Shown in pieces: positions 17,993 to 48,374 of a stretch of 64,000 nt of DNA. Under the pieces are notes generated by a model. That model did no database searches, was not told the origin of the DNA, and saw nothing but the letters and a program-made list of their open reading frames with translations. The stretch lies in the sequence record MK250019.1, one strand, 5' to 3'. The position numbers were made by a program, and so were the translations under genes. The stretch's first letter is position 1. Each line of letters begins with the position of its first letter.

Positions 17993-18309
17993 TTACTTCA
18001 ATAATTTTAGATGTCTTACATAATTTTGAGGAATCTTATAACATGCAATTGCTGTTATTTGATTATTCAAATCAGGTTCTTTGAATACACTCATTTCTTC
18101 ATCTTTACTAATATATAATCTTCTTTTCATTTGATTAATGAAGTTATCAAGATCACATGATAAGTAAACTACTGTATCATTTTGCCATTCACTATTTGGA
18201 TGTTCAATCAGAAACTGCGCTATTGCATGTCCACCTTGAACTGCTCCATAAATAGGAACTAATTTATTACTTACTAAAACATAAAGTTTTTTATTTGTTT
18301 CTAATTCAT
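17993..18309 (-). CDS. Peptidyl-tRNA hydrolase II (Pth2)-like phage protein; start codon unresolved
   Basis: Open frame KKLYVLVSNKLVPIYGAVQGGHAIAQFLIEHP...WQNDTVVYL...FKEPDLNNQITAIAC matches the Pth2-like pattern. No in-frame ATG; the nearest ATG (18309) is one frame off. Confidence 0.6.
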
Positions 18310-18345
18310 GTGGAACAAATTGTTTTTTTTTTATTAATGATTTTT

Positions 18346-18732
18346 TTAATTATTAATTTTACTTTCCTCATAATTAGAAGCTTTATATTTTTTTATTAAT
18401 TGCTGTATTCTCTTATAAAGATAATAATATTCATTAGTAAATGTTTGATATGAAAACATATAATGTTTTTTATATGTTTCATTACAGTATACTAAATATT
18501 TTTTTTGTTCATCTAAATTAAGATTATGTTTAACAATATAATATGCAACATTTATTGCATGTATATCTTCTAATGTTTCTTCTAACTTAGATTTAGCATT
18601 ACTTGTTTCTTCAAGATTATAATTTTCATCTTTTGATGATCTATTAGCAATTAATTTTAATTCTTTTCTTTTTGCTATTTCAGATTTAAGATATTTCTTA
18701 AATTCAATTAAATTTTCATTAAGTGTTTTCAT
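18346..18732 (-). CDS. Hypothetical protein (128 aa) upstream of the Pth2-like gene
   Basis: Clean ORF, ATG to TAA. Confidence 0.7.
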   Translation of the reverse strand: MKTLNENLIEFKKYLKSEIAKRKELKLIANRSSKDENYNLEETSNAKSKLEETLEDIHAINVAYYIVKHNLNLDEQKKYLVYCNETYKKHYMFSYQTFTNEYYYLYKRIQQLIKKYKASNYEESKINN

Positions 18733-18876
18733 TTTCTTCTTTAATTTGTTTTATTTTTATAATAGTGTAATAATTATTTTAAATCAAAAATAAACAAATT
18801 AAAGGTGAACCTCTACTTAATGTAACTTACCAATGTTGAAGTTTCATAATTTTCTTTTTATCATTTTTTTAAAATT

Positions 18877-18966
18877 AGTAGAATGATAGAATTTGATTCG
18901 CACAAATTTTCCTGTCTTTGAGATCTCTACACAGATTTTATCGATTATTAAACTACTATCTCTACT
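18877..18966 (-). ncRNA. Degenerate tRNA-like structure
   Basis: Terminal stem AGTAGAGATAG/CTATC(AT)TCTACT, T-arm-like AATTTG-TGCGAAT-CAAATT and D-arm-like GTTT-AATAATCGAT-AAAA. The anticodon arm is non-canonical. Confidence 0.35.
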
Positions 18967-18984
18967 TCTGTTTGCAAACCATTG

Positions 18985-19056
18985 TGCTCTATACAGGGAT
19001 CGAACCCGTGATCTGGAAGTTTAAAATTTCCTGCTGTACCGCTTAGCTAATAGAGC
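18985..19056 (-). tRNA. tRNA with UUA anticodon (ochre/amber suppressor-type)
   Basis: GCTCTAT/ATAGAGC acceptor, GCT-AAGCGGTAC-AGC D arm, GGAAA-TTTTAAA-CTTCC anticodon arm, ACGGG-TTCGATC-CCTGT T arm, discriminator A. No encoded CCA. Confidence 0.85.
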
Positions 19057-19133
19057 AATTAAAAAATAATCATTACTTCTAATAAAATAATGTAATGATT
19101 ATTTTATTTTTAAAAATTAAACACTGTTTATTA

Positions 19134-19313
19134 TTACTTTGTCTTTGAAGCCTCAATAGACTCCTTACGGAATGTCTTAAGCAACTTCTCAATTGCAAGA
19201 GAAGCCTTACGTGCACGCTGACCAGCTGCCTTATTACCCTTCTCTGTCTGTGCAGTTGCATCTGCCTGGAAAGCTGCAAATGCCTCATTAATACTTGTCA
19301 AAATCTCATTCAT
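19134..19313 (-). CDS. Histone H1-like (Hc1-family) nucleoid protein, Bacteroidetes type, 59 aa
   Basis: MNEILTSINEAFAAFQADATAQTEKGNKAAGQRARKASLAIEKLLKTFRKES. The GNKAAGxRARK signature is present. Missed by the track, which shows another frame. Confidence 0.85.
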   Translation of the reverse strand: MNEILTSINEAFAAFQADATAQTEKGNKAAGQRARKASLAIEKLLKTFRKESIEASKTK

Positions 19314-19539: not shown

Positions 19540-21026
19540 AAATAATTCACTTATAACATATATAACTTTAATATTATATATGACATATATATGATTTGTC
19601 TGAAGTGAATCTAGAAAACTACAGATTAAACTAATCTATAGAAAGTCTATATTTAATTTTAGACTTTTTGAAGAAGTAATATAGTTCAATCAAATCCTTG
19701 TATGTAGGTTGTAAATTAAATTCTTCCAACGACTCAAGATACAACTTATTAAACATACTCAAATTCGGTCTTATTATATTCTTTTTAATTTCTTTTGTTT
19801 TACTTATATATTGATTATAAAACTCATAACCACGCCTACCTATTTCTATTGATGCTAATATCATATCAGGTAAATTTAATGAACGATATAGAAAATTACC
19901 AATAAAACTTGAATATTCTGGTTTAACTTTTAATAACTTAATATTATGAATATTACAACGTTTAGTTAAATTATTCACAAATGTTGTTCTACACCATGAA
20001 TTATTAACCAATTTATTAAAATATACACCTAAATCTTTATCTGAAGTTTTGATATTTAAATTCTCTATAGAAATAAGTTGACATTTATAATATATAGATT
20101 TATTAATTATATTCTTTACAATTTGTAAAGTCTCATAATTTCTCTTATCTGAAATATATTTTCTTTCATTTGAATCAGATGAATATCCTTTATTCTTTAA
20201 ATTAAAATCTTTATCATTCAATTTTTTAATTGAATAAATACCTGATTTGATAACATCAAATTCATTTTCAGATTTCCAATCAACAATAGACCATCCTATA
20301 TAATTAGGATTTAAATCCAAAGATAGTACTCTATTTTTTATAAATTTAGTTTCATAATTATAAACATCATTTTCTTCAAATATCACATAAATATATTCTA
20401 AATCTAATTTATATGCAATCTTTATTTCTTTTCTTTCTTGTTTCTAATATAGTTTAGATAATATCTACTTTCTTTTATTTAATCCAATTAACCATAAATT
20501 TATTTTTGTATGTTTATTTGGTTTAAATATAATATTTTCTAAATCTTGTTCTATGTGAAATTTTCTATTTCCTTTAACTGATTTATTAACTATTTCACCT
20601 ATTGAATATAAAGCCGATAATCTTTTCTACTTAAACTATTCTTTTGAAATATTGTTCTTTAATCTCTAAAAATAATTCTTCTTACTGCCAAATATAATTT
20701 TCTATTTCTTTGGTATATCATAGAAAGAACATTGAATAAACCAACTATCTAACAAATATATATTGTTTAATGTTTTTATTTGTTGTTTTATATCTTTCTA
20801 AGATTTACCTTCCTATACTCTATTGTATACAAAATGCTGTACAGAACTATACTATTTCATATAATTCCGTATAATATCTAATGATTGTTCATCCGTTCGA
20901 TATTTAATCTTTAATACTTGCATTTTTAATTGTATATAATATTATATTCTTTTATTATTTATCTGAATAATTTTAAAAAATAATAAATTCTTATAAAATA
21001 TAAATTATAAGGTATTATTATATTTT
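19540..21026 (-). mobile_element. TnpB-only IS200/IS605/IS607-superfamily element #2 inserted in the RNA ligase
   Basis: Lies exactly between ligase codons ...GGC GTG TAT and AAT ATT AAG. Carries one RuvC nuclease gene and no tnpA. Ends are uncertain by a few bp. Confidence 0.75.
19574..20923 (-). CDS. tnpB: TnpB/Cas12f-like RuvC nuclease (449 aa) with 11 in-frame TAG
   Basis: MQVLKIKY start at 20923. RuvC-I VLSLDLNPNYIGWS, RuvC-II ISIENL, KVKPEYSSFIG, RuvC-III PDMILASIEIGRR. Stop TAA 19574. Confidence 0.8.
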
Positions 21027-21236
21027 ATACACGCCTCTGTATATTTCGTCTACTATTTTGATATTATTTTTTTCACAAAATGAAACTGTTTTATCCCATG
21101 ATAAACAATTATTTTTATCATCGTATATAGAAAAACATTGAAACAATTCATTCACATTTTTAAATGTATATGATATAGAATGTTTTGCCTGCATGTTTTC
21201 ACCACATACTCGATAACCGTCAGGAATTAAATAACA
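21027..21236 (-). pseudogene. RNA ligase fragment 2 (middle part)
   Basis: CYLIPDGYRVCGENMQAKHSISY...FSIYDDKNNCLSWDKT...VDEIYRGVY: motif III (GE) and IIIa region. Confidence 0.85.
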
Positions 21237-22605
21237 GTATGTTAAAACTTGAACAAATTTGAACTTTGCTCTTTATTAACTTCTTGCTTCACTCTATCAC
21301 TACTTTTTAGGTTCATTTCTGAACGGTCATCCATAGTTGGATAGTCCACAAGCTTAAATTCGGGTGTACTGCACCCTATTATTCTTAAACCTTCATCAAG
21401 TATATTTAGTGCTGCATTGTAATCTCTATTAATAAGTTTACCACAATTAGGACAGGTCCATTCTCTATCACTCAATTTTAATTTCTTAAAAATATAACCA
21501 CAACAGTTACATGTTTTACTTGATGGATAAAATCTATCTACAAATACTATCTTTCTGTTATACCATCTTGCTTTATACTCTAATATTCTTCGGAATTCAC
21601 CAAAATTCATTTCTAAAATACTTTCAGCAAGTTTATGGTTCTTAACCATACCTTTCACATTTAAGTCTTCCATACATATAACTTGGTTTTCGTCAATGAG
21701 TGAATTACTTACATAGTGAAGATAGTATTGTTTTCTATCATTTATTGTTTTATATACTTTAGCAAGTTTAATTCTTGCTTTATTTCTGTTGTTACTTCCT
21801 TTTTGTTTTCTTGAAAGTTGTTTTTGAAGTTTATTTAACTTAATTATCTCATTCTTTTTAAAATGTAAGTTATTGAATACTTCTCCTTCTGATGTGATGA
21901 TAAAATCTTTTACACCAAGGTCAATACCTACACAATTATCACTATCTTGTAATCCTTTATGTATTAAATCACCATCAACCAATATTGACAAATAATATTC
22001 ACCGCAAGGTAGTTTAGATAATGTTGTTTGTCTAATATTATCATGATGTTTTTGTAAATATTGTACATATTTTTTATTACATCTGAACTTAATATTCTTT
22101 ATATTAGCAAGAGATAACTAATATGTTGTATAATCATTCTTTCTTGAGATGGTACCGATTTCAAATCTACAGCTTTGTTTGTTATCATGTTTTGATTTGA
22201 ATTTTGGATACCCTGTATGTTGTTTAAAGAAACGTTTATATGCATCTAACATATCCATTATAGATTGTTTAAGAACTTTTGTATTCTGTTCTCTGAGCCA
22301 TATAAAATTATCATCTTTCAATAGTTCATGATGAAACCAATAACTGAGTGTAGATCTGTTTTCAGAAATATTATGTTCTTTATATTGATTTATTTTTCGA
22401 GCAAGTGTTTGATTATATACAAAACGACAACAACCAAGCAACTTATTAATTTGTGTTGCTTGTTCCATATTTGGGTATAATCTTATTTTTATTGCTCTTA
22501 ACATAATTTATTTTTTTGTTTATTTCTTTTTTCTCTTATTTATTTAAATAATTTTTATAAAAATGTACAATATTGTTCAAATTATTTATTTACTATTAAA
22601 TAACA
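21226..22605 (-). mobile_element. TnpB-only element #1 inserted in the RNA ligase, bounded by an 11-bp direct repeat
   Basis: TGTTATTTAAT (minus strand) at both 22595-22605 and 21226-21236, 1369 bp apart. Carries tnpB only. Confidence 0.85.
21242..22504 (-). CDS. tnpB: TnpB RNA-guided endonuclease (420 aa, one in-frame TAG)
   Basis: MLRAIKIRLYP HTH, GIDLGVK, ICMEDLNV, FYPSSKTCNCCG...CPNCG Zn finger, NRDYNAALN. The two track ORFs join through the TAG at 22118. Confidence 0.95.
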
Positions 22606-31239: not shown

Positions 31240-31444
31240 NNNNNNNNNNNNNNNNNNNNNNNNNNNNNNNNNNNNNNNNNNNNNNNNNNNNNNNNNNNNN
31301 NNNNNNNNNNNNNNNNNNNNNNNNNNNNNNNNNNNNNNNNNNNNNNNNNNNNNNNNNNNNNAATAATTTTTCTTTGGTTCTTTCTTTTTTGAAGGTAGAT
31401 CCTTTCAGAGAATAAATATAGTAAATATTTTTTTTAATTTAATA

Positions 31445-34550: not shown

Positions 34551-35327
34551 ATGAAGGAAAAAGAAGTACAAACAAAGGAATTATATCCATTTATTAGTGA
34601 TGCTATTAAGAAAATGGATATTAGTCTTGAAAATATTCAATGGGCACATAAAATTATTACGAATAATACTGCTGGATATTTGGATGATATTAATAAGATT
34701 CAAAAGTATGTTGAGAATATTATTGATAATGCATGTTCCGTATTTCGTGAGAAGATTACAAAAGAATTGTCATTAGATGATTTACTTTTGTATGCTCAGG
34801 TTGCAAAGACATCTCAAGACTTTGATAATAACAAGAAACGAACATCTTTTTTTGATAAAAAAATACAGGATATTACAATTAAAGACATTGATTTAATTAA
34901 TAGTACGGGTACAAGTACATATAAAGCTATTGAACAAGATTTATTTGGTAATTCTACTAAAGCTCCAGAAATTCAGAAAAGATATTGTACAGGTAGATCA
35001 ATAGCAAGAAAGGTAAAAGATACCATTAAACTTTATGATAATATTAATGATGTACCTTGCCCTGTTGGAAAACAAGCAGTATACCGTTTAGCTGTATGTA
35101 TACCTAAGAGGTTTAATAAGGTAAATTCATATAAGAGACAGCTTATATATGGACGAATTCCTACAATGTATTTTATTTCTGATAATAGAGATAGAGATTT
35201 CATTATTGCAAGAAATAATTTTACCAAGTTAATTAGAAAGAAATATTATGATGCTCTTCGTGAATATGAAGAGAAGTATGTACCTATTGGACATGATATT
35301 TCTATGAAAAAAATAAGTGTATTATGA
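34551..35327 (+). CDS. Hypothetical protein
   Basis: 258-aa ORF in the operon. Confidence 0.75.
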   Translation: MKEKEVQTKELYPFISDAIKKMDISLENIQWAHKIITNNTAGYLDDINKIQKYVENIIDNACSVFREKITKELSLDDLLLYAQVAKTSQDFDNNKKRTSFFDKKIQDITIKDIDLINSTGTSTYKAIEQDLFGNSTKAPEIQKRYCTGRSIARKVKDTIKLYDNINDVPCPVGKQAVYRLAVCIPKRFNKVNSYKRQLIYGRIPTMYFISDNRDRDFIIARNNFTKLIRKKYYDALREYEEKYVPIGHDISMKKISVL

Positions 35328-48315: not shown

Positions 48316-48374
48316 ATTTTTATAACTTNNNNNNNNNNNNNNNNNNNNNNATAGTAAAGTATATAAAGCAAGAA

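Follow-up and report, generated by a model that had tools for sequence, protein, structure and literature searches.

A conserved tRNA with a UUA anticodon in the Lak megaphages, which read TAG as glutamine and end their genes with TAA

Introduction

Why should a phage in which TAA closes nine of every ten genes carry a tRNA whose anticodon matches TAA, and why is this tRNA found in every known member of its clade? A tRNA with the anticodon UUA physically reads UAA and, by wobble, UAG, and its presence here is a puzzle of genetic code switching.

The source is Prevotella phage Lak-A2 (MK250019.1), and the Lak megaphages have genomes of about 540 kb with about 26% GC and read TAG as glutamine (Devoto 2019). 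The existence of the tRNA is already known and is not a new discovery. Supplementary Table 2 of Devoto 2019 lists a Lak-A2 'Sup TTA' at 211338-211409 with a tRNAscan score of 58.04, and Crisci 2021 predicted a suppressor that binds TAA in 51/51 Lak genomes and a CTA suppressor in 38/51, with 'no other evidence' of TAA recoding. For the wider Lak clades (about 660 kb, higher GC) the data on the UUA tRNA are those of Crisci 2021. Neither publication gives a structure analysis, an amino-acid identity or a function for Sup-TTA, and a literature search found no publication that proposes a function for it.

The DNA analysed here (the window) is a 64,000-nt stretch of MK250019.1, which maps without mismatch at record offset 192353; two stretches of N (31240-31361 and 48329-48350 of the window) were masked and left unread. 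The tRNA in the window is the gene of both earlier publications, with nothing that differs.

Results

Structure of the UUA tRNA

The single tRNA that ARAGORN found in the window is on the minus strand (18984-19056; anticodon tta), and the full Rfam tRNA model (RF00005) matched 18985-19056 of the same strand with 57.7 bits (gathering score 29, E = 7.8e-10); a custom model scored the gene at 104.5 bits. The 72-nt tRNA is canonical, with the GG D loop and the TΨC loop of RF00005, and CCA is not encoded in the gene. The acceptor stem consists of G1-C72, C2-G71, U3-A70, C4-G69, U5-A68, A6-U67 and U7-A66, followed by the discriminator A73. The anticodon stem has four pairs (G27-C43, G28-C42, A29-U41 and A30-U40) and an A31·C39 mismatch, while a second mismatch, A13·C22, lies in the D stem. 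The anticodon loop is of 7 nt, U32 U33 U34 U35 A36 A37 A38, where U34 is position 19024 of the window, U35 is 19023, A36 is 19022 and the polymorphic position 32 is 19026. This is the loop expected of an ochre suppressor, UUA in seven nucleotides with U33 and a purine at 37, and the form Y-U-UUA-A-A was found in 14/14 copies compared. The original prediction, which was made from the letters of the window and had named ARAGORN as a check, described the complete cloverleaf, the loop UU-UUA-AA, A31·C39, G1-C72 and A73 correctly; ARAGORN and Rfam confirm the fold, and what that description lacked was the strand and the A13·C22 mismatch.

Conservation and selection

Four independent Lak-A1 assemblies carry the tRNA with 100% identity, and it occurs in 15/15 GenBank Lak genomes, including Lak-C1 and all nine Lak-B. 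Distant relatives were found through a neighbouring 365-aa protein (60-62% identical there) and their contigs were then examined; the UUA tRNA is at the same place in them, directly after an Hc1-like gene. The anticodon is unchanged in the 15 GenBank genomes, in 7 IMG/VR contigs, in 4 distant relatives from ENA/Logan and in 4 independent runs, so far as U34 is concerned an invariance over about five distinct lineages in our own data. Two wastewater DNA runs and two RNA libraries gave contigs whose sole difference within the tRNA is at 19026, where U32 is replaced by C32; one wastewater RNA-library contig has U32, as do Lak-A1, Lak-A2 and the distant relatives. The matches from RNA libraries, which are assembled contigs, may reflect DNA carry-over and are no proof of transcription. 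Base 19022 (A36), at which a sequencing error had been considered, is the same in the independent assemblies and in the contigs of four unrelated public runs. A sequencing error or an oddity specific to Lak-A2 is ruled out, the U32/C32 exchange being the only polymorphism across independent assemblies and samples.

Covariation was measured over seven distinct tRNA sequences and 21 stem pairs, with 500 shuffles and slid controls. Compensatory changes, on both sides of a pair, were found in 7/21 stem pairs (three each in the acceptor and anticodon stems, and one in the T stem), and 90.5% of cells are paired, compared with 79% in the shuffles. The covariation score was 0.408 against 0.159 in the shuffles, none of the 500 reaching the observed value, and the slid controls gave at most 0.164. 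A31·C39 and A13·C22 are unpaired in 7/7 of these sequences, and the loop U33-U34-U35-A36-A37-A38 is invariant, with U or C at position 32. The A31·C39 mismatch is rare elsewhere, occurring in 2/31 phage tRNAs and in at most 1/42 tRNAs of a Prevotella genome; its one further occurrence in the phage is in a tRNA-Met(CAU) with the loop UUCAUAU (Lak-A2 record 34762-34836, plus strand).

These comparisons indicate that the UUA tRNA is a functional-looking gene under purifying selection across the Lak megaphages, and that selection acts on the anticodon and on the odd mismatches themselves. Single anticodon mutants do occur in phages without any change of code (Yutin 2021), and an assembly error or a functionless, recent point mutant on its way to decay might be suspected here too. 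Such an origin is scarcely credible and is refuted by the conservation of the gene: in many independent assemblies and samples its sequence is either unchanged or altered with compensation, it keeps its genomic position over deep divergence, and its anticodon loop is not decaying.

The meaning of TAG and TAA

With TAG read as sense, ORFs of 100 aa or more cover 0.90 of the window instead of 0.68, and its longest ORF grows from 703 to 1805 aa. The in-frame TAGs are concentrated in structural genes, and other blocks of the window are without TAG; one ORF, of 1804 aa, has 31 of them. Lak-A2 (562 genes) and Lak-B5 (569 genes) were then compared by tblastn, using our own crude gene calls. The partners of TAG in the alignments were TAG (847), Gln (464), Lys (102) and Glu (88), and the log-likelihood was -2218 for Gln as the meaning of TAG and -3818 for Lys. 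Lys as a second meaning gave a fit no better than the addition of Glu or Ser, and in this comparison TAG was never aligned with TAA or TGA, with 0 exchanges between TAG and TAA. By this measure TAG sites evolve as Gln, in agreement with the code 15 assignment of the original prediction, and there is no specific signal of Lys at TAG sites.

TAA terminates 502/562 Lak-A2 genes (89%, by the crude gene calls), equally those with and without TAG, and is the main stop codon, as had been predicted. Across about 560 Lak-A2/Lak-B5 orthologue pairs 0 interior in-frame TAA codons were found, apparent cases being confined to mis-called N-termini or extreme C-termini. A TAA stop was retained in about 190 of some 220 orthologue pairs, and one aligned with TAG. 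The comparison indicates that TAA is still a normal stop codon and has not been reassigned to sense in the manner of code 6. TGA stops are not commoner in late TAG-containing genes (10.7% vs 10.6%). In a single case a TGG (Trp) codon of Lak-B5 419352-419843 aligns with an in-frame TGA at about 35104 of the Lak-A2 record, in the middle of a well-conserved 160-aa protein; this may be a broken gene or local TGA readthrough.

CUA tRNAs and release factor

Whole-genome searches with ARAGORN found two CUA tRNAs in Lak-A2, both outside the window, and one in Lak-B5. These Sup-CUA tRNAs share U1-A72, G2-C71 and G3-C70 with Gln-UUG and Gln-CUG of the phage and with the Gln tRNAs of Prevotella; their clustering, at 0.61-0.66 identity, is likewise with Gln tRNAs. 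Like Sup-UUA they are phage-encoded, stop-codon-reading tRNAs without a phage synthetase; unlike it they have the Gln signature and Gln tRNAs as neighbours.

Lak-B1, B3, B6 and B9 gave no BLAST match to the Sup-CUA of Lak-B5. At the same locus, however, they have a Gln-like tRNA split by a 245-nt insert within the anticodon loop, which has a weak group I intron signal (15.7 bits); when joined at the U|...G| junction, the two parts fold as tRNA(CUA). The split tRNA is at about 412033-412349 of Lak-B1 (MK250020.1; L213, 1657-1973) and has the same sequence in L211, L212 and L214 (B6, B3 and B9, respectively). A CUA tRNA is therefore present in 15/15 GenBank Lak genomes, interrupted by the 245-nt insert in four of them, which rules out the argument that some Lak genomes are without a CUA tRNA and must decode TAG with UUA. 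Standard tRNA finders and BLAST miss the split form. Since all 15 GenBank Lak genomes have a CUA tRNA, some of them hidden by the intron, the published 38/51 for the CTA suppressor is probably an undercount. In B2, B4, B5, B7 and B8 the same locus has an ORF followed by an intronless CUA tRNA (L041 80-943, Lak-B5 MK250024.1); by eye this ORF resembles a GIY-YIG homing endonuclease, and it has several in-frame TAGs. The two forms suggest that two mobile-element arrangements, intron and endonuclease ORF, alternate at the suppressor tRNA locus.

A phage release factor 2 (RF2) gene is encoded outside the window, at about 287218-288354 of the Lak-A2 record (also given as 287245-288315), with a score of 406 bits. 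The gene is read in one open frame, the usual programmed +1 frameshift being absent; it has no TAG codons and adjoins a tRNA-Leu(UAA). An unusual specificity of this RF2 is ruled out, the motif SPY in place of SPF being found in Prevotella and Bacteroides RF2 as well. RF1, GlnRS and LysRS were not found in the phage, the RF1 model matching only the RF2 gene, below cut-off. Of the CUA tRNA, RF2 and GlnRS that the original prediction had thought worth searching for, the first two are thus encoded and the third is not. The kit for code 15 is complete, with TAG aligned to Gln, a CUA tRNA, and RF2 without RF1. The proposal that UAA is protected by RF2 stands as regards the gene; given that RF2 is encoded, the protection itself is possible. 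A tmRNA (Lak-A2 record 142605-142997, minus strand; tag peptide DDEIDFRMAA) lies near the two CUA tRNAs.

Identity of the tRNA and decoding of TAG

U1-A72 is found in every Gln tRNA of the phage and of a Prevotella genome, whereas the UUA tRNA has G1-C72. The Gln signature, U1-A72 with G2-C71, is absent from it, C2-G71 (U2·G71 in the distant relatives) taking the second place. Among its 12 nearest tRNAs there is no Gln tRNA, except, for the B5 copy, the Gln-like Sup-CUA at 0.54. The nearest is the phage's own Lys-UUU with an identity of 0.63, followed by host Gly and Thr tRNAs at about 0.6, and the best outside match is a Rhodococcus phage tRNA-Lys, 82% identical over 59 nt. A recent copy of a host tRNA is ruled out, as 35 genomes of the Prevotella MAG's genus gave only short chance matches, and no close parent was found in the phage or in Prevotella.

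Judged from these stems and identities, the acceptor stem and body of the UUA tRNA are not of the Gln type. The set G1-C72/A73 had been put forward as unlike Gln; this is true of G1-C72, but A73 does not discriminate here because the Gln tRNAs carry it too. A likeness to tRNA-Lys had also been seen. The nearest tRNAs are indeed of the Lys type and G1-C72, A73 and the fit of the loop agree with it, though the resemblance is weak, the identity with Lys-UUU being level with that of Gly and Thr. Under the identity rules of bacterial synthetases U34, U35 and A73 favour LysRS, while U35, A36, A73 and G1-C72 allow TyrRS. On these grounds charging by GlnRS seems unlikely, LysRS appears the most likely enzyme and TyrRS is possible; with the nearest tRNAs at about 0.6, Gly and Thr included, a Lys or Tyr identity is a guess.

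Two Lys-like tRNAs of these phages have abnormal loops. One in Lak-A2 (record 135420-135492, minus strand) has the loop UAUUUAA, with A at position 33, and one in Lak-B5 (record 196541-196615, minus strand) has the 8-nt loop AUUUUUAA, in which ARAGORN reads the four-base anticodon UUUU. They could be of a frameshift type or defective.

The original prediction had offered the UUA tRNA as a second route to TAG decoding. In its strongest form this would make it a decoder of TAG, either auxiliary or ancestral, which is the U34 member in a 'codon box' for UAR and reads UAG by wobble when late genes are expressed while RF2 guards UAA, carrying Gln or an amino acid tolerated at TAG sites. The pair UUG and CUG for Gln is a model for UUA beside CUA, and the reading of NNG codons is routine for tRNAs with U34. 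Late genes are very rich in TAG, as in the ORF with 31 of them, the tRNA gene itself lies among late, TAG-rich genes, and its A36-A37-A38 context is typical of efficient suppressors. What makes this role a strong rival is that all known occurrences of the tRNA are in a clade defined by TAG recoding, in which it is universal and RF2 is also found throughout. A second route is, however, not needed: there are two Gln-like CUA tRNAs in Lak-A2 and at least one in every Lak genome checked. The body with G1-C72 and Y2-G71 is without the Gln signature, the TAG sites show no better fit to added Lys than to Glu or Ser, and U34 is constant although C34 would be the better reader of UAG and would leave TAA alone. 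We consider a role in TAG decoding possible, if on the whole doubtful. The ever-present CUA tRNAs, the non-Gln body and the invariant U34 argue that plain back-up TAG decoding is not the selected role, and a U34 that never becomes C34, taken with the non-Gln body and with TAG evolving as Gln, suggests that the selected role needs recognition of UAA.

Stop codon contexts and readthrough

TAAT accounts for 54-57% of TAA stops, compared with a background of 37% T (p = 3e-15), and TAATAA for 13%. Directly after TAA a further stop stands in frame in 14.6% of cases (9.8% for the other frames), the odds ratio for tandem stops being 1.57 in A2 (p = 0.007) and, more weakly, 1.38 in B5 (p = 0.054). The next in-frame stop past TAA is a median of 5-6 codons away, and TGA back-up stops after TAA are not enriched. 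From these frequencies TAA stops look reinforced.

Readthrough of a few particular TAA stops, which would give C-terminally extended phage proteins in the manner of the Qbeta A1 protein, is a second way in which UAA recognition might be used, and was among the original proposals as programmed TAA readthrough. The conserved U34 agrees with it, and so would the freely varying acceptor stem, as the inserted amino acid would not matter. Among adjacent genes on the same strand, however, 112 are in frame compared with 120 and 127 in the other two frames, which is no excess. Each long coding-like extension past TAA proved to be the following gene, whose own start lies no more than 12 codons on; in the one exception, which lies in the window and spans a masked N stretch, the start is at codon 34. 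The test covered extensions of at least 25 codons. Finally, in-frame stops directly after TAA are enriched and not depleted. No specific target was found among the adjacent genes and long extensions, and with no in-frame TAA, no excess of in-frame neighbours and no genuine extensions of that length the proposal finds no backing; we regard it as quite unlikely.

Genomic context of the tRNA

The immediate upstream neighbour of the tRNA, on the same strand, is a histone H1-like (Hc1/HctA) gene of 59 aa at 19134-19313 (minus strand), which has no TAG codons. It matches NCBIfam NF051889 (HctA) with E = 3.6e-11, below the curated cut-off, and the syntenic gene of the distant relatives L196, L198, L199 and L201 matches PF07432 (Hc1). 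An Hc1/HctA-like gene precedes the tRNA by 46-77 nt in every lineage. Direct reading of the spacer reveals an AT-rich hairpin with a 12-bp stem at 19065-19103 (minus strand), between the Hc1 stop codon and the 5' end of the tRNA. A hairpin with a stem of 12-15 bp is at the same place in every lineage, though its sequence differs; those of A2, B5, L196, L198 and L201 have energies of -12 to -14.7 kcal/mol and end 3-9 nt before the tRNA. The conserved order of Hc1, hairpin and tRNA suggests a single transcript from which the tRNA is cut out, and Hc1 is the probable co-transcription partner. Neither a theta or HDV-like ribozyme nor another RNA family was found beside the tRNA down to E = 5, and scans for sigma-70 promoters and GC-rich terminators are uninformative for an AT-rich Bacteroidales phage.

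Downstream of the tRNA is a TAG-free gene of 128 aa without a family match (18346-18732, minus strand), which is syntenic in the distant relatives. One RNA-library contig (run X16) joins 18077 to 18902, with 18078-18901 missing, and would thus represent a strain without this gene. Upstream of Hc1 lies an IS-like insertion bearing TnpB (19574-22507, minus strand). It contains a TnpB RNA-guided endonuclease gene at 21242-22504 (minus strand; NF040570, 310 bits) with one in-frame TAG, and a 449-aa ORF at 19574-20923 (minus strand), TnpB-like by eye, with 11 in-frame TAGs and no family match. Contigs of four other samples break at 19540 and the stretch of the insertion shows multi-copy depth, which suggests that the insertion is strain-specific or repeated.

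The invariably tight joining to the Hc1 gene and hairpin could also be read, with the unusual conserved mismatches and the weak resemblance to Lys tRNAs, as the mark of a function other than decoding. The tRNA would then be a decoy for a host anticodon nuclease or another tRNA-targeting defence, an element that processes or stabilises the Hc1 transcript, or a Lys tRNA that presents UUU. The last had been proposed earlier on the basis of a loosened 9-nt loop. This finds no support, as UUA stays the central triplet after U33 in a textbook 7-nt loop with A37, and normal Lys-UUU tRNAs are already present in the phage. The compensatory changes, moreover, keep the whole cloverleaf, acceptor stem and T arm among them, as would be needed by a tRNA that is charged and used by the ribosome, and a non-decoding role is accordingly given little credence, slightly less than readthrough of particular stops.

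Discussion

The observation of a UUA tRNA in these phages is real and beyond chance, and the interpretations first offered for it are supported in part. The reading that we prefer, with a probability of about 0.4, is that it is a weak ochre-type suppressor, probably made together with Hc1 and charged by the host, with a selected role that needs UAA recognition. The tRNA would be transcribed with Hc1 and excised by RNase P, and would then receive its amino acid from a host synthetase recognising U35 and A73, most likely LysRS and possibly TyrRS. It would act as a deliberately weak suppressor, with UAA as the cognate codon and UAG read through a U·G wobble, and at UAA it would mostly be outcompeted by host RF1 and RF2 together with the phage RF2. 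Rare readthrough would be cheap for the phage, in whose 26% GC genome the next stop is 5-6 codons away and gene ends are of the TAAT or TAATAA form. Low-level readthrough of TAA might then strike host or competitor messages harder than the phage's own, which is the weakest step of the scheme.

Any suppression at TAA must be weak in vivo, because TAA never spread in frame while TAG did. A mismatch at 31-39 should lower the efficiency of suppression, as work on the 'extended anticodon' of suppressors would have it. Weak suppression fits the competition by RF1 and RF2, the reinforced stops and possibly the conserved 31-39 mismatch. Against the view that UAA recognition is what is selected, a benefit from global low-level readthrough is hard to tell from no benefit, and the phage RF2 would protect the TAA stops of the host too. 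A more far-reaching version, in which an attenuated non-Gln ochre suppressor, combined with RF2, tmRNA and short gene ends protected by TAAT or TAATAA, would impose low-level TAA readthrough that harms proteins of the host or of competing phages more than the phage's own, and would serve as a translational weapon or to time events in step with Hc1 expression instead of in TAG decoding, is speculative and seems unlikely, although a little less so than the readthrough of particular stops.

Known systems offer partial likenesses. The ochre suppressors of E. coli, supG/supL (tRNA-Lys UUA), supC/supM (tRNA-Tyr UUA) and supB (tRNA-Gln UUA), read UAA and more weakly UAG; they are weak and are tolerated with UAA as the main stop. 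In them too the UUA anticodon belongs to a tRNA that is normal in other respects, and the Lak loop YU-UUA-AA is that of tRNA-Lys with U36 changed to A. The E. coli suppressors, however, are laboratory point mutants of host tRNAs, whereas the Lak tRNA is a long-conserved natural gene without a close parent and with the conserved mismatches A31·C39 and A13·C22. In ciliates with genetic code 6, tRNA-Gln(UUA) and tRNA-Gln(CUA) make both UAA and UAG sense. Ciliates and Lak alike have UUA and CUA tRNAs in one genome, but both are of the Gln type in ciliates, while in Lak only TAG is sense, TAA ends 89% of the genes and the UUA tRNA is non-Gln. A further phage case is a TTG to TTA mutant of tRNA-Gln in a crAss-like phage of the alpha group, read as 'pre-emergence' (Yutin 2021). 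Both are phage tRNAs that match TAA without reassignment of TAA; the crAss-like mutant is a single recent point mutation in one genome, and the Lak tRNA is old, kept by selection and found throughout its clade.

The puzzle of a TAA-matching tRNA in phages that stop at TAA is narrowed by these findings to a tRNA that is under strong selection, is non-Gln, is not the sole reader of TAG and has not made TAA sense. Its two conserved mismatches and its fixed partner gene are concrete starting points for experiments. A natural tRNA that reads UAA weakly, if that is what it is, would be of interest for the engineering of genetic codes, and controlled readthrough of TAA, if true, would be a new kind of phage-encoded translational control.
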